NCBI GenBank assembly: GCA_002269645.1 | Contig: NIVC01001149.1 | Location: 62,001-126,000 of the forward strand | DNA length: 64,000 nucleotides | Source: Macrostomum lignano | Taxonomy: Eukaryota | Direction of reading: 5' to 3' | In this document: one piece after another, positions 11,718 through 45,902 of the stretch | Numbering within the stretch: the stretch's first letter is position 1 | Layout: each line of letters opens with the position of its first letter | Notes under the pieces: model-generated | What the model was told of the DNA's origin: nothing | Database searches by the model: none | Seen by the model: only the letters and a program-made list of their open reading frames with translations | Translations under genes and position numbers: made by a program

Positions 11718-16881
<5,164 letters not shown>

Positions 16882-22367: not shown

Positions 22368-25300
22368 ATGAGGACATAGCCACTTACAGCAGGAGGCTGA
22401 AGCAGCTGTCCGAAGCTTGCAAATTTACCGATTCGGCAGACCGGCTCAGAGATCAGTTTATCTTTGGACTCCAGAGTAAAGAGATTCTGCGGAAGCTACT
22501 GTCTGAGAAAATCGAAGACCTGACGTGGGACAAGGTAACGGCGGTAGCTGCGGCTTGCGAAGCGGTCCAGCGTGGGGAGAAAGACATGACCGGCTTGAAT
22601 GTACTGCAGATGCGTCAGACAAGTGGTCGACCGCAAAAAGGCAGCGAAGCCGGAAGGAAACGTTCACAAAAACCCACGAGTGAGGACAAGAACGCCAAGC
22701 AGGTCACTTGCTACTGCTGTGGGAAACCTGGTCATCTAAAGAGTGAATGCCGATTCAAATTCTTGAAGTGTGATAGCTGCGGAAAATTGGGTCACCTGAG
22801 ATCTGTCTGCAGAGCTTCGAAGACAAAGGCCGAAAGACACCGAGAGTCTTCAAGGGTTCGACTAGTGCTGCAATCACCATCAATGGAGAAGTGTGAAGAG
22901 GATCAATGCGACAAGATATTCTCCATGACAACCAGCAAGCAGAGAATTTTGCGCACAGTGAGTATTAACGGCACAAGTGTTGAAATGGTGTTTGATACGG
23001 GTGCGGATGCCTCATTGGTAACCAAACACTCATTCGAACAACTGTCACAGAGGACAGATGTTATGCCAGCCGACAGAACATTTAAGGACTATCAGGGCTG
23101 TGCAGTCCCGCTGTTTGGTAAGTCGATCGTCACAGTGCAGTTCAACGGCATCACAACACAGCTTCCTATCTTCATCGTGGATCGGCCAGGAGCTCCGAAC
23201 ATCTATGGGCTTGAGTGGATGCACGCCCTTGAGCCGCACCTGAATATTTACCAGGTAACGCATTTCGAAGCACATCTAGTTTTAAAGGACGAAGCCAGAC
23301 CCGTGTTTCTCAAGCCAAGACCTATACCATACGGCATTCGAGAGAGTGTGAAACAGGAACTGGACCGCCTGGAAAGTGAAGGAATTCTGAAGAAGATTGA
23401 TCAGAGCGAATGGGCAACGCCGATTGTGATTGTGAGAAAGCAGAGTGGAAAAATACGCATATGCGGCGACTACAAGGTGACTGTCAACAAATCCCTATGC
23501 GATATGGTCTCAACCACCCCATGCATTGAAGATGTGTTGAGCCAGTTGGGTGGAGCCAAGATCTTCTCTGTTCTCGATCTGACGAACGCTTACCTACAGT
23601 TACCAGTTGACGATGCGTCTGGAAGCATCCTAACTCTGAGCACCCCTTTCGGGTTATATCAGCCCAAAGCCCTTGCTTATGGTGTCAAACAGGCACCGGC
23701 AATTTTTCAGGGATATATGGACAAGCTATTAGCTTCGGAGAAAAATGTGGTTAGCTACCAGGACGACATCCTCATATATGGAAAAACGGAACAGGAACAC
23801 GACAACCAGATTAACGTTGTTACACGCATCCTACAGGAAAACAATGTCGTGGTTAACTATCAGAAAAGTGCACTCAAGCGCAGTAGAGTAAAGTTTCTGG
23901 GACTCGACATTGGCAGCGAAGGAATCTGTCCAGCAGAAGACAAGATGGAAGCCATACGGAGTTTAGCAGATCCAAGGTCTGTCAAGGAGCTTAGATCATT
24001 CCTGGGCCTGGTAGAGTTTTACTCCAGATTTATAAAAAATCTATCTACCATCAAAGAGCCTCTAGCGAAGCTCGTTCGACAGGATGAAGTGTGGCAATGG
24101 GGACCCATGGAACAGTCTGCGTTCCAGCTAATCAAGACTAGCATCTGTGAGTCGAAGGTCATTAAACCGTTTGATCCATCCGACTCAATTACAAGACTCA
24201 CAACGGACGCCTCTCCTTACGGTCTTGGAGCAGTGCTTGAACAATCCAAAGGACCGGTCATGTTTATATCGAAGACACTCAGTAAGCCGGAGCGTAACTA
24301 TGCACAAATTGAGCGCGAGGCGCTGGGAATCATCTGGGCTGTTAAGCGTCTCCATAAATACTTGTATGCTCGAAAGTTTGTACTAGTGACGGATCATCAT
24401 CCACTGAAGTATATATTTGATCCAGCAAAGAGCCTCAACAGCCTGGCTAGTGCTAGAATTCAGCGATGGGCGATCTCACTGGCATCGTATGACTATACCG
24501 TGGAATGCCGTCGATCTGAGGAGATTCCAGTAGCCGATGCGCTTTCAAGATTGACATCTACGAGCGCCGATAATGAGCAATTTGACGTCAGTACAGTTCA
24601 GGACACCGTACTCAACATGCCGGTGGATAAAAAAGAAATTCGCAGACAGTCGCTACGGGATCCAACAATGCGTAAGCTGTTTGCCCAAGTAAAACATGGA
24701 TGGACGGTAAGGGGAAAGAATCAGTTGCCAGAATTTTCCCGGCTACAAAGCGAGTTCTCTATTGAAGATGGAATCTTGTATCGGGGAATCAGAACTATTA
24801 TCCCCACTGTACTTCGTGATCAAGTGCTACGAACGCTTCATGATGGGCATTTAGGAGCGGAGAAAATGAAATCTATTGCCCGACAGTGCGTATGGTGGCC
24901 ATCAGTGGATGCGGACATTCAGCTGCGGGCAAAGGCATGCAAGGACTGCCAGCAGCAAAAAGATCATGCGAAGAGCGAATGGATTCCATGGCCACAGGAA
25001 ACCGAGAAGTGGAGCCGAGTCCATATAGACTATGCTGGTCCATTTAATAATGGAAAATATTGCCTCATAATGATTGACGCCTATAGTAAATGGGCTGAGG
25101 TCCATCTGATGAGTTTCACTACAACGGAAGAAACTATTCTGCGTCTTCGCCGCACATTCGCACAGGAAGGTGTGCCACTTACACTAGTGTCCGATAACGG
25201 ACCACAATTTACGTCCCAGCATATGGAAAACTGGCTACAGTCAATCGGGTGTAAGCACATTCTAACACCACCATATCATCCGCGATCGAATGGACAAGCG

Positions 25301-25882
25301 GAGAGATTCGTCCGTGATCTAAAAAACCACCTCAGAGCAGCACAGCAGGAAAGCTGCATGCAGGCCAACATAGATCGATTCTTGCTGCAGTATCGGAATG
25401 CAAAGCACGCTGCCACAGGGAAATCTCCAGCTGAAATGATGCGTGGTCATTTATTGCGTGGCCCGATCACCCAACTGTCAAAGCAACCGGTGTGGGTCAA
25501 GGTCTACAATGATCACCAACGCAAATGGGCACCTGGAGTCGTCATCAACTCTGAAGGCAAGGCTATTGTTAATGTTGAAGGTGAAGATGGAAACATCTCG
25601 AGAAGGCACCTGGAGCAGATAAAACCAAGAGTTACCGACGCTAAAGAGGCCGAGGAAGATACAAGTCATAGCGATTCTGGTTCAGAAGCAACATTTCAGA
25701 GTAAAATGAGTCCGGACTCATTGCCAACAGATCAAGCGCGCCCAGAAGACGCTGATAAACGCTATCCTACTCGTAATCGAAGGCCGCCTGATAGACTGCA
25801 GTACAAAAAAACTCGGGACACCAACCAAACAGAGCTTAACGTGAATCCAAGCGTAGTTTGCAATGGAAAGCTACTCTTGTGA
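22368..25882 (+). CDS. Single-frame gag-pol polyprotein (2 CCHC knuckles, protease, RT, RNase H, integrase); 5' partial
   Basis: Frame is open upstream of the 22586 Met (EDIATYSRRLKQLSEACKF...LRDQFIFG). CYCCGKPGHLKSEC, CDSCGKLGHLRSVC, FDTGA, YQDD, TDASPYGLGAVL, HDGHLG...C..C, IDYAGP, SDNGPQF, SNGQAER. Confidence 0.95.
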
Positions 25883-26631: not shown

Positions 26632-27390
26632 CTAGTTTTTTAGCCATGGGAACTGTTTTAACACCTCTGGGCGTCTCTCGCCGTAATCATAGAGGAGTTC
26701 CTCGCCTGCCTTGATGTCTCGAGTGGCCAGAAAGGCTAGGTGGGGCTTGTCGCCTAGACCAACCACAGTCGGCTTTAAATTTGCTTTCAGCCGACTATGA
26801 TTGATGTAGCGACCGACATACCCACTTGCATCGGTAGCATCGATGCCAAAGGCTCGGTCTCGCCAAGAGAAAAAGAAAAGAAATGAGCTAGACCTCCCTT
26901 GATCTTGAAGTTGCTGCTCCCAGTCGAGGCGGGCCTTCTGCCCCTGGATCAGGTTTCCGCCGTAGCAGCAGACAGTTTTGCCTTTTGCAAGGTCGATACG
27001 AGCGAAAGCGCCCAGACCCTCAGCATCTACGCCACCGGCATGAACCACAACATTACCGGTCTGTATCATTGTCTGGTGGTACATGTCGGCCATTGAGATC
27101 TGCCTCAGGGACGCGATCTCGGACGTCAGGGGCCGGTCTGCACTCCGTAAGCTAGCTCGGCCATGGGGCGTCATATGTGGGACCGGTATGCCGACCCCTT
27201 CCGGCGTAACATTAACGTCCGGAACAACTATTTCGCAATTAGCCATCTCCATCGCAGGCGCAGACACTATAGGAGAGGCGGCAGCGTGGCCAGAAGACTG
27301 CGCCGGTGACCTTCTAGAGACGTCAACCGGCGTACTGGTTGCAGGCGCATCTTCTTCGGCTTGCCGCTGGAGCCAAACGCTATAGGGAAT
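26632..27390 (-). CDS. Terminal exon encoding a PR-Set7/SETD8-like SET-domain lysine methyltransferase
   Basis: Acceptor ttaattgtcAG|ATT at 27391/27390; GLGAFA, CCYGGNLI, IDAT, GRYINHS, RDIKAGEELLYDYGER...FPWLK; upstream exons not identified. Confidence 0.85.
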   Translation of the reverse strand: MPYSVWLQRQAEEDAPATSTPVDVSRRSPAQSSGHAAASPIVSAPAMEMANCEIVVPDVNVTPEGVGIPVPHMTPHGRASLRSADRPLTSEIASLRQISMADMYHQTMIQTGNVVVHAGGVDAEGLGAFARIDLAKGKTVCCYGGNLIQGQKARLDWEQQLQDQGRSSSFLFFFSWRDRAFGIDATDASGYVGRYINHSRLKANLKPTVVGLGDKPHLAFLATRDIKAGEELLYDYGERRPEVLKQFPWLKN

Positions 27391-27480
27391 CTGACAATTA
27401 ATAAAAAATAAAAAAAGAAAATTTTGTAATGCGTTTGTATTACTCAAACATGCAGATTTAAAAATGCGTACAAGTATTTA

Positions 27481-31414: not shown

Positions 31415-31496
31415 GTGCTGTGACCCTCTAATCTTGGGAACACCCGACTAGGACTCATTATTGAAGTTCATGTACCTGTACTAGACTGCTCAGGCC

Positions 31497-31660
31497 ATAC
31501 ATAAGACGCTACCAGACATACATAAGACGATACCAGACTAATACATAAGACGCTACCAGACTAATATATAAGACGCTACCAGACTAATACATAAGACGCT
31601 ACCAGACTAATATATAGGACGCTACCAGACTAATACATAAGACGCTATCCGTACGCTACT
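31497..31660. repeat. ~23-bp minisatellite (acataagacgctaccagactaat)
   Basis: About 6-7 tandem units. Confidence 0.92.
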
Positions 31661-33570
31661 GAAACCGCTATATTTAAATAAAAATTCCAAGAAATTACTA
31701 AGAAATATTAGTATAGAGGCAAAAAACCTGTCACAACTTGGTGGCATTAGTGGGATATTATCAAGAAAGAAGTCACCCCTACCACAACTTTGGTCCCTAC
31801 CACAACTTTGGTGGCAGCTTTAAGAATAATTTCATAGACAGAAGAATAACGCTTGTTACACTTTTAATTCCAACTAATGCTTGATTAGAACTTTTGACAA
31901 TTGACAATATATTCTTAACTTATTAATCTTAGCTTAGGAGTTTTTAAAAAAATTATATGCTTTTAAATGGCACTGCTACTGCTAGATTCATAGCTGTTAG
32001 AAAATGAACATTTGCAAAATTAAAATAAGAAATTATAAATGAAGCATTGCCAGCCATCATTATAAGATGTTTATACATTAAAGTTAGGCTTCCATTGCCA
32101 TTTACACTGTGACAGCTGTTAGAGAACTGGTTCTGGTGCTAGAACTAGTCATTACCAGTGGCTGTATCATATTTAACAGGTTATAACTGTTATAACTGAG
32201 TATAGCTCATAGGCAATGGCTAGATTCCTAGAGTTCCAGCACCGGAACCCATTTTCTAACGGCTATGGATCTGGCAGTGCCATTATTATAGAGATGGAAC
32301 AGATTTCTTAAAATTATTCTTAGTAGTATTGAATTATATGCTTCTATATGGCACTGCTGGATCCATAACTGCTAGAAAACGGGTTCCGGTGCCAGAACTC
32401 TAGCCATTACCATTGTCCATTACTGATTGAATATAGGCATATGCCTTGTCATGAAAATAACTTTGGCTGATAATTTTTACCAACGTTAAAACCAATGTTA
32501 AAATGTACAAAGCATGTGCATGATTCCACATGATGACTCACTCACCCGTCACCCCTCACTCCTTGGTCAGCTACCCCATAATTTTTGTCGTCTAGTATAT
32601 AGCCACCCCACTCTTACTATGTACATTTTAACATCAGTTTTAATGTTGGTAAAAACCAATCCGCCAAAGTTATATACATGCGTAGTCATGCAGCTCAGCA
32701 GCTGCAAGCAGAGCTGCAAAGATGGTTATGGCTAGAGTTCCAGCACCATAACTAGTCCCTAACAGCTGTGTAACTGACACTGCTGGATCTTCTATCTAGG
32801 GTAATATAGCCATAAGAAAACTGGCTACTGCCTATTGGCTTTGCTGCCAGAAGTCTACTCAAGCTAGCCTGAGCCTGTTGCCTTGCTTTTTTGGAACAAA
32901 AAACTTGACAAGGCAACTTTTGTTTTTTATCTTGAACTATATAGTTACTTAGAACTATATTCAAACTTATTTAGTTGCTGCGGGCCTTTAGACCACCACA
33001 AGTTTTAATGGTGGCCCAAAACTGGCATACATAGTAGGCATTTTTAGAATAGGGAAGAAATAGTAAGTCAGATTCAGATACCAATTGACATTCTTGTAAA
33101 ACTTGCAACTTATTCCCTTAACCTTGAAGTTTTACTTTCCTATAATGTTTGACAAAACTGGAGTGGAAGTTATTGTCCGCTTCTATGAATCTGTTTTTAT
33201 TAGGTTCGCTTGTTTCGCTTGTTTTTAGAAATGGCTGTCCAAGTCATGTTGATTAACATTTAAAGATTGGTCCAAATCAAAACTACACAGTATAACAACA
33301 ATGTACAAAAATAAATTTAGAACGCTATGCGTAGATATGAAATTCAATTAAAAATGTATAGTTGATTTTTTTTATTATAGCCTCTAATATACATGTTTTA
33401 AGCAAAGTTGTAAATACTACACACAATGTCCACCATGTCAAAATACTATTAGGCGGAAAATAAGAAAGACAAGAAGCATCATAAAACATTTCAAGTGAAA
33501 AATGGCAAGACAGTTTTAGCAATAATGAAAACAGAAAAACAGTGACACGAACGTGAGCATGTGTATATTT

Positions 33571-33627
33571 TCTTTTCCTCCTCCTTTTTTATCCGGGCTG
33601 GGGACCGGGAATAGCGGAATTAAAAGA
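33571..33627 (-). ncRNA. Twister ribozyme-like motif, type P1 (copy 1)
   Basis: UCUUU UAA UUCC GCU AUU C CCGG UCCC CAGC CCGG AUAAAAAA GGAG GA GGA AAAGA: P1, P2, P4, UAA cleavage loop, GC/GC pseudoknot and GA core align with the rice twister as recalled. Confidence 0.75.
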
Positions 33628-34120
33628 TTTGACTAAACGCAAGAATCACAAATTTGGTGGCCCTGAGAAGGGCTGTTTTGTCGTTCAGGGGTCACTCATT
33701 TATAGGTCGGTGACCAAGAACTTACGCACACCACGACTGCATAAGTGCAGTGGCAGTGGTCCACTTCTGCAAGCCGCCAGACTGGCCAGCGTGGCTAGGC
33801 TTGGCACTTTGCCAGTTGCGGCACGTTTGGCAGCCAAACGAACTGACCAACGATATTTTGCAAAAACGGTCCGCACTGCGCAGCGTTGCCAGTCGAAACC
33901 GGGCTTAGGCGGCGCGGAGGTAGAACACGAGCTGGCGCTGGAGCTGGCACAGCTGGCCCCTTGCACCATGAAGTTTGCCCCCAAAAGCAGCCTGGCCCAT
34001 TGCAGATTGCGTAGAAATCATTGTCTCTTGGACAATGTTTCCTACGGCACGTATTCGCCAGCAACTTTCGGCAGCAGCCTTAATGGTGCAAGGGGCACCA
34101 TTCATCTTCTGCCACCTCAG
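33571..34120 (-). mobile_element. Unclassified retroposed element ending in the twister motif
   Basis: 33571-33720 recurs at 40973-41125; 33985-34066 recurs inverted at about 41131-41215; upstream boundary uncertain. Confidence 0.55.
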
Positions 34121-34727: not shown

Positions 34728-34772
34728 CCTAACCCTAGCCTAACCCTAACCCTAACCCTAACCCTAACCCTA
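34728..34772 (+). repeat. Interstitial (CCCTAA)n run inside a degenerate ~460-bp repeat
   Basis: taaccctaaccctaacc run; flanking blocks recur near 34500, 34940 and 35415. Confidence 0.85.
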
Positions 34773-35699
34773 ACCTAACCCTAAAGCATTGAAATTTCAG
34801 TAATTCTCTCTAAGAGTCATTATAGCACTACTACAGCATTATAGCGATTCCCTGCAAGCCTCGACATCGTAGAGATTCCCAAATGAATCTCTTAACTTCG
34901 ACATGAAGCTTATTTTATTTTTTACATTACGCTTTTTTTATCAGCGATCCCTCCCCAGAGGAGGCATCAAATAATGTAATAAAAAGTTTTCAATAAACTA
35001 CATGTAGCTTCTGACTTTAGCCTTGAAATCTCATTTATACCCCCGTGAACCTTGACATCTCAGATATTCCCCCCGTAAGTCTTAACATGTCAGCGATGGC
35101 CCCCATAAACCTTGAAATCTAAAAAATCCCCTGTTATTCTGTTAACCTTGAAATCCGATAAAATATAACCCTCAACCCACACCTGACCTAAACCTAACTT
35201 TAACCCAACCTAAAGCCTTGAAATCTCAGCAATTCTTCTCCCCTAAGCCTTGACATTTTAGTGATTCCTTCTTTAAGAATCACAGCACTATAACGATTTC
35301 CACCAAGCTTTGACATCGTAGCAATTCCCAAATGAATCTTTTAACTTCGACATGACTTTTCTTTTATGTATACGTAGTGCTACTTTTATTTTTTACATGA
35401 CTCTTCTTCTATCAGCGCCCCCCCCCGTGGCGAGCCAACAAATAATGCAATAAAAAATTGAGTAAAGTACATGAACTTTGAAGTAGCTTCTGACTTTTGC
35501 TTTGACATCTCAGAACCCCCCCCCGTAATCTCAGTTATTCTCTGAGAGCCTTTACGTCTCAGTTTTTCTCCCCAGCACAGCATTATAGCTGCATTTAATT
35601 TTTACATGACACCCTTCATGTCTGACATGACGCTTCTTTTATTCTACCATGATGCTTCTTAATTTTTTAAATGACACTTTCATTAGTTTTTAAATGAGG

Positions 35700-36950
35700 C
35701 TCCTATGATTTTTTCATGACGCTTCTATGATTTTTACATGACACTTCTATGATTTTTTATATGACGCTTCTATGATTGTTTATATGACGCTTCTATGCTT
35801 TTTACATGACGCTTCTATGATTTTTTTACATAACGCTTCCATGATTGTTTACATGACGCTTCTATGATTGTTTACATGACGCTTCTATGATTGTTTACAT
35901 GACGCTTCTATGATTTTTTACATGACGCTTCTATGATTATTTCATGACGCTTCTACGATTTCTGCAGGACGCTTCAATGATTTTTACATGACGCTTTTAT
36001 GATTTTTACATGACGCTTCTATGATTGTTTACATGACGCTTCTATGATTGTTTATACGACGCTTCTATGATTTTTACATGACGCTTCTATGCTTTTTACA
36101 TGACGCTTCTATGATTGTTTACATGACGCTTCTATGATTGTTTCATGACGCTTCTATGATTGTTTACATGACGCTTCTATGATTGTTTACATGACGCTTC
36201 TATGATTGTTTACATGACGCTTCTATGATTGTTTATACGACGCTTCTATGATTTTTACATGACGCTTCTATGCTTTTTACATGACGCTTCTATGATTTTT
36301 TACATGACGCTTCTATGATTGTTTCATGACGCTTCTATGATTGTTTACATGACGCTTCTATGATTTTTTACATGACGCTTCTATGATTGTTTACATGACG
36401 CTTCTATGATTGTTTATACGACGCTTCTATGATTTTTACATGACGCTTCTATGCTTTTTACATGACGCTTTTATGATTTTTTACATGACGCTTCTATGAT
36501 TGTTTCATGACGCTTCTATGATTTTTTACATGGCGCTTCTATGATTGTTTACATGACGCTTCTATGATTTTTTACATGACGCTTCTATGATTGTTTACAT
36601 GACGCTTCCATGATTTTTTACATGACGCTTCTATGATTGTTTACATGACGCTTCTATGATTGTTTACATGACGCTTCTATGATTGTTTACATGACGCTTC
36701 TATGATTGTTTACATGACGCTTCTATGATTTTTATATGACGCTTCTATGATTGTTTACATGACGCTTCTATGATTGTTTACATGACGCTTCTATGATTGT
36801 TTAAATGATGCTTCTATGATTGTTTACATGACGCTTCTATGATTTTTTACATGACGCTTCTATGATTTTTTACATGACGCTTCTATGATTGTTTACATGT
36901 CGCTTCTATGATTTTTTACATGACGCTTCTATGATTTTTACATGACGATT
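35700..36950. repeat. 22-24-bp minisatellite (acatgacgcttctatgatt[g/t]ttt), about 50+ copies
   Basis: Direct observation. Confidence 0.98.
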
Positions 36951-37539
36951 CTTTTTAAAAAGTCTTTTAGTTTTCCTGACGTTGAAAAGCTTTAATTAAA
37001 AAATTATACTCTATGAAAATTCGAACCATCGTCGCTGCATTTAACAGTTCAGTTTGTTCACCTCTAGGCTAGCTCTCATCGTTTTGATAACATCAAATTT
37101 TGCACTTATATAATTCAACACTTTAAAATCCAAGCATAGAGTAAATCACACGAAGCAGTTATGACATAATCAGTTTCTCAGTCAGTCAGTATCAGTTAAC
37201 AATATGGTTACGCAATCTAAATCAAGTCTGGTGCTACGCTTCCACACTGCATTTTCAATTCAAGTCGGAGTTACAATTCAGTTATGATGCAATCTATTTC
37301 AGAATCAGAATTCAACCAGTCAGTTTTTTCTCTAGCATTCTTACAATGCATTTCAAGTCGAAAAGTTTGCTTGACCTTTGCAAAAAAGCATGTTTTTCGA
37401 ATATTTAATGCCTTTAGCATCAAGAAATTTCTTAGCCACGATGCATGTACAGTCACGGGAAAATTTCTGATCGAACAGTGCAAGTTCGAACAAAATCGGT
37501 ACAGCCATTTTTTCTCTAATCGATCACATAGACACAGAC

Positions 37540-40500
37540 AGACCATTTTTAGTATATACGAGGCCAACTCCTCCTCTGGAGGAGAAAGGGGAAGAATTCC
37601 CATCACCGGTACTCCATTCCCTGAAATGCCATTCCCTGAATCCCATCATCCAACTTCTCTCCGCGAAACTGAACATCATCGAAATCTTCTCCGTAAAAGA
37701 GAACTCCATCAAACACCTCTCCGTGAAACTGACATTCATCAAAATCCCCTCCGAGAAATAGAAATCCTCTCCGTGAAACTGGACTCCATGGAAATCCTCT
37801 CCGTGAAACTGACATTCATCAAAATCCCCTCCGAGAAACAGAAATCCTCTCCGTGAAACTGGACTCCATGGAAATCCTCTCCGTGAAACTGACATTCATC
37901 AAAATCCCCTCCGAGAAACAGAAATCCTCTCCGTGAAACTGGACTCCATGGAAATCCTCTCCGTGAAACTGACATCCATCAAAATCGTCTCCGCGAAACA
38001 GAAATTCTCTCCATTAAACTGGACTGAATCGAAATTTTCTCCGTAAAAAAGAATCAACTCTCAGGATTTAGTGGTTAGGGTTAGGGTTAGGGTTAGGGTT
38101 AGAGCTACAACGCAGCAGCGTGTTGAACCAATTGAATTAATTGAATGCGCAACCGATTTCACAGTCAGTCAGTATCAGTCTCGGTAAAAGTTAACAAAAA
38201 GATTGCGCAAACTAAATCAACCCTCCAATACACAGCGACTGACCCCCTTCCAATACGCAGTGGCAATTAAAAGTTGAACCCCCCCTCCCACCAACTTTTG
38301 GGGGTTGGTCGAACCCCCATTGAACTCCAAAATGAGTACACTGCCGAAAGTTAAAAGTATGGAAATCGTTTTTTAAATGCTGTGCTTTTTGTTTTCACAT
38401 TTAAAGCAAACAACTTATATCCCCGAACTCAGTATTGCAAGATCTTTCCAGTAATATAAGTCTCTCTTCTGAAAGTTTAAAACTCGAGGAACAGTTAGCG
38501 CTTGAAATTTCCTGATTTAAAGCATTAAAGTATCGAGTGTACGTTCACAGCCTGCTAAAGAGGCTCGCAAGTTTATTCATTAAATTTTACTGCCCAGCAA
38601 ATACACATGGCTGCCTATTGAATGCCGCCGATAATAAAACCAATTAAATCTCGACACAGTCCTAGCTATCTCCTTACACTGTACAACTGCTATGTACACT
38701 CAGCCCAAGCCCAACCCCCTCCCATTCCGGGGGAATCGTTAAATTTAATTGAACCCCCCAACACGCGGGGGTTATTTGCATTGAACGCGGAACACGCGCA
38801 CCCACCACCCCTCAATACACAGCGGCCCGCGGGCGGAGGTTGGGGTGGCTATTTTTACAAACTGGCTGCAGCCCCAGGCAGAGTGGCCAAAGAAGGTTAT
38901 TGAGGGTTAAAAAAACAGTTTTCTGCTTTTCTAGGGATCTTAAAATGAAAAAATGAAAGATTAAAATTGCTATAAACCCAATCCGGAAAATTTGCAGTTT
39001 TCCCATATAAGTTTCAACGCTGACTTGCCAGTAGTCTAGGAGAAAAATTGCAACACACAAACAAACAACGCACCAGTTTTAGTATTAAGACGAGGCCAAC
39101 TCCTCCTCTGGAGGAGAAAGGGGAAGAATTCCCATTACCGGTACTCCATTCCCTGAAATGCCATTCCCTGAATCCCATCATCCAACTCCTCTCCGCGAAA
39201 CTGAACATCATCGAAATCTTCTCCGTAAAAGAGAACTCCATCAAACACCTCTCCGTGAAACTGACATTCATCAAAATCCCCTCCGAGAAATAGAAATCCT
39301 CTCCGTGAAACTGGACTCCATGGAAATCCTCTCCGTGAAACTGACATTCATCAAAATCCCCTCCGAGAAACAGAAATCCTCTCCGTGAAACTGGACTCCA
39401 TGGAAATCCTCTCCGTGAAACTGACATTCATCAAAATCCCCTCCGAGAAACAGAAATCCTCTCCGTGAAACTGGACTCCATGGAAATCCTCTCCGTGAAA
39501 CTGACATCCATCAAAATCGTCTCCGCGAAACAGAAATTCTCTCCATTAAACTGGACTGAATCGAAATTTTCTCCGTAAAAAAGAATCAACTCTCAGGATT
39601 TAGTGGTTAGGGTTAGGGTTAGGGTTAGGGTTAGAGCTACAACGCAGCAGCGTGTTGAATTAATTGAATGCGCAACCGATTTCACAGTCAGTCAGTATCA
39701 GTCTCGGTAAAAGTTAACAAAAATATTGCGCAAACTAAATCAACCCTCCAATACACAGCGACTGACCCCCTTCCTATACGCAGTGGCAATTAAAAGTTGA
39801 ACCCCCCCCTCCCACCAACTGTTGGGGGGTTGGTCGAACCATCATTGAACTCCAAAATGAGTACACTGCCGAAAGTTAAAAGTATGGAAATCGTTTTTTA
39901 AATGCTGTGCTTTTTGTTTTCACATTTAAAGCAAATAACTTATATCCCGAACTCAGTATTGCAAGATCTTTCCAGTAATATAAGTCTCTCCTCTGAAAGT
40001 TTAAAACTCGAGGAACAGTTAGCGCTTGAAATTTCCTGATTTAAAGCATTAAAGTATCGAGTGTACGTTCACAGCCTGCTAAAGAGGCTCGCAAGTTTAT
40101 TCATTAAATTTTACTGCCCAGCAAATACACATGGCTGCCTATTGAATGCCGCCGATAATAAAACCAATTAAATCTCGACACAGTCCTAGCTATCTCCTTA
40201 CACTGTACAACTGCTATGTACACTCAGCCCAAGCCCAACCCCCTCCCATTCCGGGGGAATCGTTAAATTTAATTGAACCCCCCAACACGCGGGGGGGGGT
40301 TATTTGCATTGAACGCGGAACACGCGCACCCACCACCCCTCAATACACGGCGGCCCGCGGGCGGAGGTTGGGGTGGCTATTTTTACAAACTGGCAGCAGC
40401 CCCAGGCAGAGTGGCCAAAGAAGGTTATTGAGGGTTAAAAAAACAGTTTTCTGCTTTTTTAGGGATCTTAAAATGTAAAAATGAAAGATTAAAATAGCTA

Positions 40501-40620
40501 TAAACCCAATCCGGAAAATTTGCAGTTTTCCCATATAAGTTTCAACGCTGACTTGCCAGTAGTTTAGGAGAAAAATTGCAACACACAAACAAACATCGCA
40601 CCACTTTTAGTATTAAGAGA
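37540..40620. repeat. Recent tandem duplication, unit about 1.53 kb (2 copies + stub), each with ctccgtgaaact subrepeats and (TTAGGG)5
   Basis: gaggccaactcctcctctgg at 37560 and 39092; stub at about 40600-40620; TTAGGG runs at 38073-38102 and about 39604-39633. Confidence 0.93.
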
Positions 40621-40972
40621 GGATTGTGTACGTTGCAAACTCGTAATACACGAATACTAAAACTCTTAATTACAAGTTTTGCAATAGTATAGTTTCAGCT
40701 TTGCGTGCCTCTATTTTCTGTGTCCCTCACTAAGGGAGGAGGGGTAGAAGAATGGAGGAGAGAAGGGTAGAATGTAGGCGAGAAGGGGTAGAATGAGGAG
40801 AGAATATTTATTTGCACCTCAATGCACCAATACAGGACCCACACAATTGAAAACAATATTAAATCGAGCAGAAAACACGCAGCTTTATGCACTCGCAGTA
40901 TCGTTATATTCAGCTGTTCCAATGCAGCTCCTAGCAGGCCAAGCCCGAACCCTTTCCCTTCCCCAGCCCGAA

Positions 40973-41031
40973 CCTTTCTCTCCTCTTTTTTCATTCCGGG
41001 GGCTGGGGACCGGCAATGGCGGAGTTAAAAG
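40973..41031 (-). ncRNA. Twister ribozyme-like motif, type P1 (copy 2)
   Basis: UCUUU UAA CUCC GCC AUU G CCGG UCCC CAGC C CCGG AAUGAAAAA AGAG GA GAG AAAGG. Confidence 0.72.
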
Positions 41032-41539
41032 ATTTGACTAGCGCAAGCATCAATAATTTGGTGGCCCTGAGAAGGCCGCTTTAGCGTTCAGGGGTCACTC
41101 ATTCTATAGGTCGGTGACCCAAAACCTATAGGTTGCTGGCCAATACGTGCCGTAGGAAACATTGTCCAAGAGACAATGATTTCTACGCAATCTACAATGT
41201 GCCAGGCTGCTTTTTAGTGGTCACCTCAGAAGTCAACATCCGTACGGAACTCCAAGTCGCCCATGGACATCATCACACCGGCCTTCTCGAAGTTCATGAA
41301 GTCAAACGGATTTCCCATAAAAACTCACGAGTGCTTTTGCTTTCTTCCAAAAACTTTGCGAACTCTGTCTCAAAGCGCAAAAATGCCATCTCTTCAACCT
41401 TTCGGCGACTTTGCAACCAAGCAGCTGAAAATGGATGAAAACCAATTTTTCATTCAGACTGATAATATATGAAAAAATAATAAATATGAACATACAATAT
41501 CACAATGACATACGAATTAATTCAAACAAATAAAATACT

Positions 41540-44400
41540 AACTGATCGACATGATGCGTGCGAAGTTCATAGTGTCAGCGACGTAATTCAGAAAATTATC
41601 GATTATCATGCACCATCTCCTTTACTTGAAGTCCAAATCTGCGGAATGCAGCCAAATGCGCTCAAAGCTTTCGCCATCTATCAGGCCCACAGACTCGGTG
41701 GCACGAATGCCGAACAACAACTGACAAAGAAGAACGTGACCATAAACGTGCAACACCGGCAAGACAAAAGTTAATATTGGATCGCAGAATCAACCAGCCA
41801 GTTTGCAACTTATGTCGTAAGATACGATTATTGAAACGTGGGGAGGAATATCGCGCAGCATCTGCTGAACCATGCACTCGCTGTAGTTAAGGCTGTAAAA
41901 CAAGCAAAATAACTGGTGTTCAAAAATCATAAAGGATAACTAGTACTCGTAAGCACTGAAAGGAATTACCGCTCGCCAGGAGTAGTCACTAGTATTTACT
42001 AGTCAAAATAATCCCGACGCCTGTTCATCAATTTCTAAAGTTAATAAAAATTTTAAAAAAATTATCGTTTGTATGATTTAAGAAGAATAACAAATTTCTA
42101 GTCAGATAGCCCAACATTTTTAGTTAATACAAACAATAACACCACGATGACACAGATAATAAATATTTTCTATGGCATAAAACTATACAAAATTACTGCG
42201 CGAATACTAACTACTACGACGTTAAAATATAATTCTCATAGACATGACTAGAGAGATAGACAAGATCTAGACAAAAATCTATGCAGTAAACGAAATAAGG
42301 GCAAAGCCCATGTACTGACATAAAGTACAGTGGAATTGCTATCGCATGTAGATGTAGCAACCTTAACTTAATTTAATTAGTGTACAGTGCCCTACGATTC
42401 TACGAGTTGATTAATATTTTAATTTTGAATTCAACGAATGTGAAATTTTAAATTTCCGCGTGAATTTTTATTTTGTTTCAATTTTTAGTTTGTTTTAACT
42501 TCATGCGAAAATTCTAAAATTATTTGAATTTGAATAAAATTAGTCTTTTTCGCATAATATTTACAAACGGATGCAGTATATTACCTCCAAGGACAAATCC
42601 AAGTACAAAGGCGATTAATTTTATGCCTTTATCAAACATCTAGAAATTAGAAAACTGGCACTTCGTGAATTAGGAAATTGGCCTGTCTATCAATTATAAA
42701 TATCTCGCTTGGTACCTTACTTTGCTAAAAAAACATTCAAAACGAAAATGGGTGACTAACTAGTCCTCGTTTCTTGCGCCTGTACTATTTTTCTCTGACC
42801 AAATTTCCACTAAATTTAAAAACAGAAGACTATAGATTCGTAGCATATTGCAATTCTAAGCTAAGCTAGACATAAAAGAAAGAAAATGATTACAATTTAG
42901 GACCAACCGGCCACGTTTGCTTGCCAAAGACAAAGCCGTCTTCATCCAGTATACATTAATATACGAGAAATGAGTCCCGGATGTGCAGCGTTTTTAGCTT
43001 GCTTCATTGCTAGTACAGTGCTAGTACGCTAGTGCGCACTAGCGTTCCACACTCACCCCACCCCACCCCACCCCTCTCCGCTCGTGGGCTGGCCCTCTCT
43101 AAGGGAGCCCATCCCACCGTGGGCTGGGTCCCGTTAACGGGCTATTTTTAGCGTGGGATGGGCTCCGCTATCGGCGGGCCGTTAGGTGCGTGGACTCACT
43201 ATCTAGTCAGGTATTTTTTGTTAAGTGGATTGTCTGTCTAGTCCACGGCCGTTAGGTGGCGGAGGAACGAAAGAGCAGAAGGGGGAAGGGTCCAGCGAGC
43301 GCACAAGGGGAGGAGTGCAGCTATCTAGAATTGCATACACTGAGCAATTGTACGCGGCAGGCCAGGCAACAACAGTACAGGCAAGCGCCAAATTTGGCGG
43401 CTTCCACTAACTAACCCTAGGCTAGAAAAACTTCCTAATTTTTATGTTAATGAGCCTCATTATGATGACTCGATTGCGCCATATTGTGCAACTTCTTAGC
43501 GCCAAGGAAGGCTGCTTAGAGTGCATGGAGGCAGCAGAACAGTTCCTATTACAGATGGCGGAGTAGCCTAGTAAGGGGTTGTAGCCTAGTAAGGGGTTGT
43601 AGCCTAGTAAGGGGTTGTAGCCTAGTAAGGGGTTGTAGCCTAGTAAGGGGTTGTAGCCTAGTGGTTAGGGCGTCGGACTCACGACTTGAAGGTCGGGGGT
43701 TCGATTCCCGATCCCTCTGCAACAATTTGTGTCCTTGAGCAAGACACTTAACTCTGCGTTGTTTCAGTTTACCCAGCTGTAAAATGGGTACCAGCATTAG
43801 CTGGGGTAATTGAGGGTGTGTGTGGCGACCCCCCAGTCCTTGGACTGAACAGCCGTACGCAGCCTTCAGATGCGCCGCGCAATAGCTGCGGCTGAGCTGT
43901 CGGTTGCACATCTGCCCATTGGGCAGGTGTAATCAATTATTATAAAATTATTATTATTACAGATACTAGCAGCGTACAACAGCGCCTAAGATGTGACTGC
44001 GGCCCTATGCTTGCAGCAGAAAGCTGCGGCCACATCACTGCTATATAAAAGATACATGTTGGTGTGAATTTTACTTACATTCCACTTTCGAACTGCATGA
44101 GGTGGATTGTGGCCATGAGCAGCTTCAAGACAGGTCTTACACACCTGAAGGTGACAGCTTTCACAACGAAATAAGCCCTCTGATTCCTAACAGATAAAGC
44201 AATTGCCTTTGATAAAAAAGTAAGCTGCCACACCATCAGCCAGCTGTTCACTGAGCAATGCCCATTTCTCCTTTTCACATCGGGCATCATAACGGCTAGG
44301 GCCATTGGGTTCTTCAAGCAGCTAAAAATCTCCCACTGTAACTTCACCTTCTACAGCCTAGGCTCCTGAAGAGTCCCCGAAACGACTTTGCCTGAAGCAT
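41540..44400 (-). pseudogene. Decayed, spliced KDZ (Kyakuja-Dileera-Zisupton) transposase with N-terminal cysteine cluster
   Basis: Minus strand 41890-41560 translates as SYDISCK...LPVLHVYGHVLLCQ...VGLIDGESFERIW (KDZ core, with stops). About 44200-44076 gives CFIC*ESEGLFRCESCHLQVCKTCLEAAHGHNPPHAVRKWN followed by a GTAAGT donor. Confidence 0.7.
43557..43954 (+). mobile_element. tRNA-derived CORE-like SINE with (ATT)n tail
   Basis: A box TAGCCTAGTGG, B box GGTTCGATTCC (43698-43708), CORE-like tgtgtccttgagcaagacacttaac...ctgtaaaatggg; TSD TATTACAGAT at 43547-43556 and 43955-43964. Confidence 0.92.
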
Positions 44401-44618: not shown

Positions 44619-45902
44619 TTATAACACTCCACGGTCGGCTCGAACAGTTGCTGTCAGCAGTGTGCTGCGTTCGTACAGAAAAGTCGCAAGCCGTACTGAA
44701 GCAAACCACTTGTCGACGAAAAGGTGATAGCCGAAACCGAGCAGGTCCTTGCAAAGGTGCACTACGATTTTCTCGCTTAGAGACAGCTGGTCACAACCGA
44801 GGTCGTCGCCAAAATGAGAGTTCTCTTCAGCAGTCGAATGTACTAGAAAGTTATACAGGTAGCCAGATGCAGACTCACAGGCGCAGTACATTTTAATTCC
44901 AACTCTGGCTCTCTTCGATGGGATGTACTGCCTAAACTGAAGGCGCCCCTTGTACAGAATCAGGGACTCGTCGACGCTGACCTGCTGCTCCGGCTGGTAC
45001 ACGTTCGCGCAGAGCTGCTGAGCCAGACGGAGCAGCGGCCGAATCTTGTGCAGTGGGTCGTTCGAGGCGGGTGCTCGTGCATCGTAGAAACGAAGGAAGG
45101 CCAGCAGCTGCTTGAATCGGTCACGGGTCAAGCCATTGGGCGATTGAAAAAACGGAGTACTGTGAATGACACTGGTGCTCCAGTAATCATGCAGTTCCGG
45201 CTTCCGTGAGATGCCCATGAACAGGTACATACCCAACAGCTTGGATATCTCACTGCGGTTTGTGTCCTTCCATGACTTCAGCAAGCTCGAAACATCTCCA
45301 TCATGTGTCGCCTGCTCATACTCAGCCCAAGCTTTTGCGTTTGTCCACTCCACGATCTTATCCAGCAGCTCATCGGTTAGAAACAGTCGTAGAAAATATT
45401 GGATGTCTTCACGGTCTTCGGGAAGGACAATGCTGGGGTTTACACCCGAAATTCCAGTGAAACTGGGGCCGTCTTCAACAATGTCTTCGCCTGGCTCCAC
45501 AAACTGCCAATCGTCTTCTACTTCGCTGATAGTGACCGACTCAGACGACTCGGAGTTCTCCGCTATTCCAGCGTCACTTTCGGAGTCGGAAGTCAACAGA
45601 ATATCCATATTTGGATTGATTTGAATTACATGAATAGAATTGTACAGAATTTGGCACAGCCCTTAATATACTAAAACTGGACTGTCTATGGCCAGTCTTG
45701 TACAGTTTTGATAAGCGTGTGTGCAACCCATTCCAAATGTACATTCTCCTTCAACCCTAGATTAGACCAGCGATGGCTGGCTTATCGGCAGGAGTGGCAA
45801 TGCAATTCAGTTCACTGAAAACTTGAAATAGTCTATGGTCAGCTCTGCTGACCATGCCGGCAGGAACGGAGCTTTCTATTTAGGAATTCAGGCTTGAAAA
45901 GG
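44619..45902 (-). mobile_element. 3'-truncated piggyBac (PGBD4-like transposase ORF 45608-44619)
   Basis: TTAA|CCTTTTCAAGCC terminus at 45906-45890; acidic N-terminus; YWST, RDRF, DPLHKIRP, VDESLILYKGR, QYIPSKRARVGIK, HLFVDKWFAS; third Asp and second TIR absent. Confidence 0.9.

Follow-up and report, generated by a model that had tools for sequence, protein, structure and literature searches.

Background

Apart from 5′ processing of the Perere-3 element in Schistosoma, the roles of twister ribozymes in eukaryotes are largely unknown. Perere-3 is a long interspersed nuclear element (LINE) of the RTE clade with a twister at its 5′ end; its target-site duplication (TSD) abuts the cleavage site, the sequence upstream is variable, and an APE/reverse transcriptase (RT) open reading frame (ORF) follows (PMC8501958). 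Small self-cleaving ribozymes of other classes are found in the metazoan non-LTR (long terminal repeat) retrozymes and hammerhead satellites (Smalpha, newt satellite 2, coral and mussel repeats), which are short non-coding units of 150-450 nt, and in R2 and other LINEs, whose hepatitis delta virus (HDV)-like ribozymes release the RNA of the repeat from a longer host transcript. Here we describe two related twister motifs on the minus strand of a 64,000-nt stretch of Macrostomum lignano DNA (contig NIVC01001149.1, positions 62,001 to 126,000), hereafter the window, by whose own numbering all positions are given. Each motif forms the 3′ end of one copy of a short non-coding repeat, which we call unit E.

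The arrangement in unit E differs from that in Perere-3, as the sequence upstream of the ribozyme is kept, the sequence downstream is not, and no RT is present. An earlier reading of this stretch made from its letters alone (the sequence-only reading) had correctly placed the Schistosoma Perere-3 twisters at the 5′ end of their element (PMC8501958). With the metazoan retrozymes unit E shares its short non-coding form, a single small self-cleaving ribozyme and a low-complexity setting rich in transposable elements (TEs), and a monomer-processing role is plausible for it; unlike them it carries a twister in place of the type I hammerhead, and its copies are not tandem in the window. The likeness to the HDV-like ribozymes lies in the use of a small self-cleaving ribozyme to set one RNA end of a repeat. 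In R2 and other LINEs, however, the 5′ end is set and the ribozyme stays with the conserved RNA, whereas the ribozyme of unit E would leave with the 3′ product.

The reading we favor, at a probability of about 0.5, is that both sites descend, in diverged and decaying form, from a single short non-coding unit, and that the twister would have set the 3′ end of the unit's RNA.

Detection of two twister motifs

Both motifs are matched by the Rfam twister-P1 model (RF03160) and, judged by sequence and pairing together, the motif is a genuine twister ribozyme in a compact type-P1 form that lacks P3.

33571 to 33627, minus strand: twister motif copy 1, type P1, no P3 (RF03160 match, pair table and minimum free energy (MFE) fold; predicted cut U33622/A33621)
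40973 to 41032, minus strand: twister motif copy 2, degenerate, type P1, no P3 (RF03160 match and pair table; predicted cut U41027/A41026)

For copy 1 the match at 33572-33626 scores 46.4 bits, with E=3.8e-9 in a 601-nt search and E=4.1e-7 when the whole 64-kb window is searched against all 4227 Rfam families. The match of copy 2 at 40974-41031 scores 32.9 bits, with E=2.8e-5 locally and E=0.003 in the same window-wide search. The covariance search that the sequence-only reading had proposed as a check thus returned low window-wide E values at both sites, but both scores fall below the Rfam gathering score of 67.2 for RF03160, and a scan of the window at gathering thresholds reports a tRNA as its sole hit and no twister. 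In both RF03160 alignments the P3 positions of the model are deleted, with a 5-nt linker in their place; P3 is an auxiliary stem of twisters (PMC5113685; PMC11662667). Its absence would most obviously account for the low scores.

A hand-made descriptor of the core (TAA-N4-GC-N5-CCGGTCCCNAGCCNGG, with up to two mismatches allowed) finds two sites in the window, which are the two twister copies; shuffled sequences give an expectation of 0.00. Folding energy alone is uninformative here, the MFE of the two 55-mers being unremarkable (z=0.35 and -1.14), and the MFE fold of copy 1 recovers P1, P2 and P4. As the two copies are homologous, they are counted as one independent occurrence and not as two.

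Structure of the two copies

Base-by-base mapping reproduced every helix that had been assigned to a type-P1 twister in the sequence-only reading. P1 forms all five pairs in copy 1 (UCUUU/AAAGA) and in copy 2, there with one U·G. The predicted scissile bond of copy 1 is U33622^A33621, the position named in the earlier reading, followed by A33620 (A+2), and that of copy 2 is U41027^A41026, followed by A41025. P2 is complete in copy 1 (UUCC/GGAG, 4/4 with one G·U) and has three of its four pairs in copy 2, the remaining one being a C·A mismatch. P4 (CCGG/CCGG) is 4/4 in both copies. Pseudoknot T2 (PK1), in which the GC after P2 pairs with the GC of L4, is 2/2 in both (G33615-C33597 and C33614-G33598 in copy 1, and the same pairs in copy 2). 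The candidate general acid A+1 is A33621 in copy 1 and A41026 in copy 2, and the general-base G with the A that follows it corresponds to G33580 and A33579 in copy 1 and to G40982 and A40981 in copy 2.

In the twister consensus L4 has 9 nt (UCCCAAGCC) and donates both pseudoknot strands. L4 of copy 1 reads UCCCCAGCC, and that of copy 2 is longer by two C. Both copies have an A-to-C change at the L4 position that normally makes a trans A·A contact, which is the change to CAGC that the sequence-only reading had seen in both. Pseudoknot T1 (PK2), between the CCC of L4 and the GGG of the GAGGG strand, has two of its three pairs in each copy: the outer pair is C33603·A33576 in copy 1, and the middle pair is broken in copy 2 (C41007·A40979) by a G-to-A change at the equivalent of G48 in the Osa-1-4 twister of Oryza sativa. 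The outer T1 C·A and the shared A-to-C of L4 are the only imperfections of copy 1.

The damage differs between the copies, and the ancestor we infer is therefore a near-perfect twister, in keeping with the earlier observation that the mismatches are copy-specific and that a consensus restores the motif. Choosing the consensus-like state wherever the copies differ yields UAA-CUCC-GC-CAUUG-CCGG-UCCCCAGCC-CCGG-AUAAA(A)n-GGAG-GAGGG-AAAG, which fits the twister consensus at all core positions but one and in which T1 would have been 3/3.

This order of elements is that of Osa-1-4, which likewise has P1, U^AA, a 4-bp P2, GC and a 5-nt linker in place of P3, P4 CCGG, a 9-nt L4, CCGG, an A-rich 3′ strand of L2, P2′, GAGGG and P1′. 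The linker is GCCAAUG in Osa-1-4 and GCCAUUG in copy 2. The Osa-1-4 sequence used in our alignment is consistent with every numbered residue cited in PMC5113685. The E twister differs from Osa-1-4 in having C for the first A of L4 (UCCCCAGCC), an AU-rich P1 of 5 bp and an L2 3′ strand that is three A longer, in the damage to T1 (both copies) and P2 (copy 2), and in its location in an animal host and within a repeat. The twisters of S. mansoni share with it a flatworm host, a location in repetitive DNA and the identical strings CUCC/GGAG in P2, GC, CCG-GUCCC-AGC-CCGG and GGAG-GAGGG (PMC8501958). This identity of P2 and the flanking core makes a flatworm twister lineage plausible. The S. mansoni twisters and T-variants carry a long P3, unlike the E twister.

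Predicted activity and conservation

In a saturation mutagenesis of Osa-1-4, only G13, G30, A46 and G48 had relative activity <0.2 for every substitution; P1, P2, P4 and L2 were robust to mutation and the pseudoknots were sensitive (PMC5113685). By sequence mapping, copy 1 retains the equivalents of all four residues, and each of its catalytic and mutation-intolerant positions is intact, while copy 2 has A at the equivalent of G48. Among more than 2,600 natural twisters tested, the class without auxiliary stems was the most active (mean fraction cleaved, 0.85), and the length of L2 is unconstrained. Natural twisters with the A-to-C change at the trans A·A contact showed no significant difference from controls, and C·A mismatches in the larger pseudoknot were among the better tolerated, while two imperfections in that pseudoknot gave a mean fraction cleaved of 0.55 versus 0.76 (PMC11662667). 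By extrapolation from these measurements, the ancestor would probably have cleaved efficiently, some reduced activity may persist in copy 1, and copy 2 probably has very little or none.

Between the copies, identity in the ribozyme segment is 74-80%, versus 80-83% for the rest of unit E (aligned blocks), and the disruptive changes are copy-specific and without compensation. A ribozyme that is no better kept than its surroundings and whose damage is uncompensated points to decay and not to maintained function. The pattern looks as if a once-functional motif had decayed neutrally, with no sign of current selection for catalysis.

Extent and parts of unit E

Besides the two ribozyme motifs, six features were assigned on the minus strand, namely the two copies of the unit and two hairpins in each.

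33571 to 33732, minus strand: unit E copy 1, ~155-160 nt (pairwise alignment; similarity from about 33730 to 33572)
40973 to 41136, minus strand: unit E copy 2 (same alignments; its 5′ edge abuts a 92-nt palindromic repeat, X)
33690 to 33715, minus strand: hairpin 1 of copy 1, GGUCAC/GUGACC with a 14-nt loop (read from the sequence; MFE folds of both copies)
41092 to 41120, minus strand: equivalent of hairpin 1 in copy 2 (read from the sequence; MFE fold)
33656 to 33674, minus strand: histone-type 3′ stem-loop of copy 1, AGCCCU-UCUC-AGGGCC followed by ACCAAA (RF00032 match, consensus pattern)
41060 to 41078, minus strand: histone-type stem-loop of copy 2, one C missing from the 5′ strand of the stem (RF00032 match of 15.9 bits, consensus pattern)

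Unit E is ~155 nt long and non-coding, has a GC content of ~50%, and shows 84% identity between the copies over 157 columns (33572-33724 versus 40974-41128). In the 5′ to 3′ direction of the minus strand it consists of hairpin 1, the histone-type stem-loop, a 33-nt spacer and the twister, which makes up its 3′-terminal 55 nt. About 100 nt upstream of the motif are common to both copies, and the 100 nt beyond each end give no convincing alignment. Similarity stops at 33572/40974, at most 1 nt from the 3′ strand of P1, so that the alignments reproduce two points of the sequence-only reading, namely shared sequence upstream with divergence right after P1, and a motif at the 3′ edge of what is shared. 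Its description as a dispersed element fares less well, since it is based on a pair of copies that share one orientation and are separated by 7.4 kb of a single window; blastn at word sizes 7 and 9 finds there only this pair and repeat X.

The loop of hairpin 1 in copy 1 contains TATAAA (33699-33704), and the loop and 3′ arm together hold stops in three frames. Six-frame peptides of E, of X and of a GC-rich block upstream of copy 1 matched no protein at E<=10 among 5.8 billion proteins. Just 3′ of the copy 2 twister (40936-40977, minus strand) lies a short tandem duplication, GAAAGGTTCGGGCTGGGGAAGG / GAAAGGGTTCGGGCTTGG; as it starts inside the 3′ strand of P1, the 3′ junction of copy 2 has been remodelled.

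Under the favored explanation, transcription of the minus strand of E would allow the ribozyme to fold (P1, P2, P4 and the pseudoknots T1/T2) and to cut between U33622 and A33621. A twister cuts on its own 5′ side and the conserved sequence lies upstream, and therefore the conserved RNA would be the 5′ cleavage product. It would be freed with a terminal 2′,3′-cyclic phosphate, 33 nt after the stem-loop's ACCA, and the ribozyme would remain on the downstream, non-conserved fragment. The twister would in that case serve unit E as a device for setting its 3′ end or for trimming read-through. E may have been copied either through RNA or by duplication at the DNA level.

Histone-type stem-loop

The sequence-only reading missed the histone-type stem-loop, as it did the known P3-less, Osa-1-4-like architecture and the lack of better conservation in the ribozyme. 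The stem-loop, GGCCCUUCUCAGGGCCACCA, lies 33 nt upstream of the predicted cut, between a 5′ flank rich in A and a 3′ flank of ACCAAA. The Rfam model RF00032 matches copy 1 at 33635-33679 with 21.5 bits (E of 0.0021 in the local search and 0.22 across the window); this score and the 15.9 bits of copy 2 are both below the gathering score of 34. Compared with the textbook consensus GGCYCTTYTNAGRGCCACC, copy 1 has one mismatch (18/19) and copy 2 has two, and at two or fewer mismatches the E copies are the sole matches in 64 kb, where 0.01 would be expected by chance. Each copy has a single defect in the stem, different in the two, and the ancestor was therefore a perfect GGCCCU-UCUC-AGGGCC.

The histone mRNA 3′ stem-loop (RF00032) and that of unit E thus have in common a 6-bp GGYYYU/ARRRCC stem (5/6 pairs in copy 1), a UYUN loop, an A-rich 5′ flank and a 3′ ACCA. 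Unit E differs in its sub-threshold score and in lacking both a histone ORF upstream and a recognizable purine-rich histone downstream element (HDE), none being seen in the 33-nt spacer before the twister. Replication-dependent histone stem-loops sit 30-60 nt past the stop codon of a histone gene, a placement not seen at E. A tblastn search with H2A, H2B, H3 and H4 found no core-histone coding sequence (CDS) in the window, the best E of 0.89 being far from the locus, and ten ORFs around both copies have no Pfam domain at E<=1. A search of JGI/ENA metagenome contigs for the stem-loop and twister pattern returned 35 matches, all of them chance, GC-rich, mostly bacterial-looking and none with the L4 of a twister. 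In the literature searched, no paper connects twisters with histone stem-loops.

We also considered a small-RNA gene, in which the TATAAA would precede the stem-loop by ~25 nt, AAUUUGUGA would be an Sm-like site and the TTTT in P1 would stop RNA polymerase III. This candidate was rejected: no Rfam family supports it, and it is further weakened because a stop for this polymerase inside P1 would block transcription of the twister.

Proposed retrozyme-like or Penelope-like membership

The sequence-only reading had likened the locus to a retrozyme-like or Penelope-like unit. Taken as an LTR retrozyme, the stretch from copy 2 to copy 1 would have "LTRs" of 155 nt that are 84% identical and a core of 7.25 kb of satellites, versus the usual core of 600-1000 nt. 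The marks of plant-type LTR retrozymes are lacking by eye, with no 4-bp TSD (the flanks GTTTTG/AAAATA differ), no TGG-type primer-binding site (PBS) after copy 2 and no polypurine tract (PPT) before copy 1. We rejected this reading on the missing TSD, PBS and PPT and on the interior, which consists of satellites and a 1.5-kb tandem duplication. Membership among the retrozymes was not borne out in the form of tandem 150-450-bp repeats either: the 64-kb window has no head-to-tail tandem E and no second unit adjacent to a copy.

The comparison with Penelope-like elements (PLEs), in which pLTRs bearing minimal hammerheads enclose an ORF with RT and GIY-YIG, likewise found no support. The window has no hammerhead match at E<=1 (all Rfam families), and its minus strand holds no RT or endonuclease ORF in the ~10 kb downstream of either copy (23.5-33.5 kb and 31-41 kb), although GIY-YIG was not searched for specifically. 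Both ORFs of the window that encode an RT, a LINE and a Ty3/gypsy pol, are read from the plus strand, and each lies over 7 kb away from either E copy.

Weighing the alternatives

Several points weigh against the reading of E as a unit with a twister-made 3′ end. Both covariance scores (46.4 and 32.9 bits) are below the gathering score. Copy 1 has two imperfections in the larger pseudoknot, and its predicted activity is carried over from data on other twisters. No promoter is recognizable, the TATAAA of the first hairpin being a mere sequence match. With only two homologous copies, all boundary arguments rest on a single event, and by a rough estimate the 3′ boundary could meet P1 by chance in a few percent of cases. 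Finally, a 5′-cutting ribozyme at the 3′ edge of a unit is not inheritable through its own cleaved RNA, so that copying through RNA needs extra assumptions.

A local DNA duplication of a solitary twister locus, with later indels trimming the shared part to 155 nt and E being no mobile element, is a minor but serious possibility. It accords with just two E copies in the same orientation and 7.4 kb apart, with a 5′ edge of copy 2 that is set by the adjoining 92-nt repeat X, and with the lack, by eye, of a TSD or a poly(A) tail; moreover, the many tandem duplications and minisatellites between the copies mark the region as duplication-prone. What it explains poorly is that similarity breaks off no more than 1 nt from the P1 terminus, where a random breakpoint would be unlikely to fall, and that the flanks share nothing else but X, which is inverted and 96% identical and therefore differs in age from E. 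We consider it very unlikely that the twister represents a Perere-3/RTE-type 5′ ribozyme, which would occupy the initial 55 nt of a non-LTR retrotransposon and trim read-through RNA from upstream, with both copies having since lost the LINE body. In flatworms no other role of twisters has experimental support (PMC8501958), the presence of truncated twisters at the 5′ ends of RTE elements is described as general (PMC7761336), and P2 and core sequence are shared with the S. mansoni copies. The observed pattern is nevertheless the reverse, with ~100 nt conserved upstream and immediate divergence downstream, and no minus-strand APE/RT ORF lies within 10 kb downstream of either copy. LINE copies are also 5′-truncated, so a ribozyme without a body is the outcome least expected, and it would be needed twice at the same base. 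Chance resemblance without any ribozyme ancestry is hardly credible. Both matches are below the gathering score and the 55-mer MFE has z=0.35, but the window-wide E of 4.1e-7 scales linearly to ~0.005 for a genome that we take to be ~0.8 Gb, the pseudoknot partners are present although a nested model does not score them, and the ancestor fits the consensus at all core positions but one.

Two further explanations were weighed. In a retrozyme-like element with a twister for its hammerhead, transcripts would be cut at two ribozymes, a tRNA-type ligase would close them into circles, and the enzyme of a LINE or PLE would reverse-transcribe them. If the template is circular or uncleaved and synthesis is primed on the purine-rich 3′ strand of its twister (GGAGGAGGRAAAG), both the 3′ boundary, where a purine-rich tract is indeed found, and a variable 5′ truncation would be explained. 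The ~155 nt of E also fall within the 150-450-nt range of metazoan monomers (PMC7229834), engineered twister pairs yield circular RNAs (cited in PMC7229834), and the E copies are direct repeats in one orientation. We nonetheless regard this explanation as unlikely: the copies are not in tandem within the window and are separated by 7.25 kb of satellites and duplications, no 4-bp TSD, PBS by copy 2 or PPT before copy 1 is seen by eye, the ribozyme has no preferential conservation, and cleaved RNA would give circularly permuted monomers that begin with the twister, an order not seen here. Slightly more doubtful still is a 3′-end cassette of an RNA polymerase II gene, in which the stem-loop is joined to a twister whose cut, 33 nt further along the nascent RNA, replaces or adds to U7/HDE cleavage, the two loci being orphaned relics. 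For it speak the near-canonical stem-loop (18/19 to GGCYCTTYTNAGRGCCACC), unique to the E copies in 64 kb against 0.01 expected, its local RF00032 E of 0.0021, an ancestral stem that was perfect with a different single defect in each copy, a 33-nt spacer without a purine-rich HDE, and the start of E ~15-20 nt ahead of stops in three frames. Against it, no core-histone CDS is found in the window (tblastn best E=0.89), the ten tested ORFs have no Pfam domain at E<=1, RF00032 is below its gathering score with a window-wide E of 0.22, the metagenome search for the combined pattern gave chance matches only, and the literature searched links no twister to histone stem-loops. The hairpin may just as well represent an upstream P0-type auxiliary stem that is joined by a linker, as present in ~10% of twisters (PMC11662667). 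In its broadest form, in which the Macrostomum stem-loop and twister are one conserved cassette, the primary cut, 33 nt beyond the stem-loop, falls to the ribozyme and not to U7 small nuclear ribonucleoprotein (snRNP)/CPSF73, and the cassette serves a gene family or belongs to a new class of short mobile unit with a 3′-terminal twister in place of the retrozymes' hammerhead, the idea is speculative and improbable in our estimate.

Genomic setting

The window is dense in TEs and minisatellites, and no gene of recognizable function touches the twister locus. A LINE ORF at 11989-14931 on the plus strand (980 aa, RVT_1 and RNase H) is 96-100% identical to many UniRef M. lignano proteins. Three further coding features were identified.

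22586 to 25882, plus strand: Ty3/gypsy-type pol with protease, RT, RNase H and integrase (ORF domains)
44619 to 45608, minus strand: piggyBac-type DDE transposase fragment (ORF domain)
26632 to 27447, minus strand: SET-domain ORF (ORF domain)

No ribozyme match at E<=1 lies beside the LINE, Ty3/gypsy, piggyBac or SET-domain ORFs.

Repeat X is an imperfect palindrome of 92 nt found at 33975-34066 (plus strand) and 41131-41224 (minus strand), 96% identical, with a central hairpin CATTGTCTCTTGGACAATG; its orientation relative to E is opposite at the two loci. At the first locus it lies inside a 141-nt palindrome (33956-34096) with 14-nt terminal inverted repeats GCCCCTTGCACCAT/ATGGTGCAAGGGGC, and at the second it abuts the 5′ edge of E. 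X looks like a young miniature inverted-repeat transposable element (MITE) or a foldback element.

The interval between the E copies contains a 1.5-kb tandem duplication (37500-40600, 98-100% identical), in which 80-nt repeats (30+50 nt) keep long ORFs open on both strands, e.g. MSVSRRGFPWSPVSRRGFLFLGGDFDECQFHGEDF. Arrays of a 23-nt minisatellite occur at 35600-37000, with a higher-order periodicity of ~181 nt, and at 31495-31678, and telomere-like (TTAGGG)n/(CCCTAA)n tracts lie between the E copies at 34753-34793, 38067-38107 and 39599-39639. A tRNA-Val(CAC) at 43646-43720 on the plus strand (Rfam 37.4 bits; also found by ARAGORN) follows an array of five 18-nt tandem repeats of its 5′ terminus (GTAGCCTAGTAAGGGGTT; region 43545-43720, plus strand). 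This array could be the head of a tRNA-derived short interspersed nuclear element (SINE) or the product of slippage at a tRNA gene.

Significance

The present evidence supports a modest claim only, that of a bona fide but decaying twister pair of known architecture. The finding adds a member, unusually placed, to a known ribozyme class and is not a new kind of system. In the literature searched, no paper describes ribozymes in M. lignano. This species is a free-living flatworm model in which transgenesis is established, and the question is therefore genetically testable there. The histone-type stem-loop beside the twister offers a concrete and testable hypothesis: should the cassette explanation be true, it would be a natural, ribozyme-driven module for 3′-end formation or termination that is independent of polyadenylation. 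The placement of the E twister would be unusual if it proves general, and if E is a real family, it would provide a natural twister that sets the 3′ end of an RNA, the opposite of the LINE paradigm.

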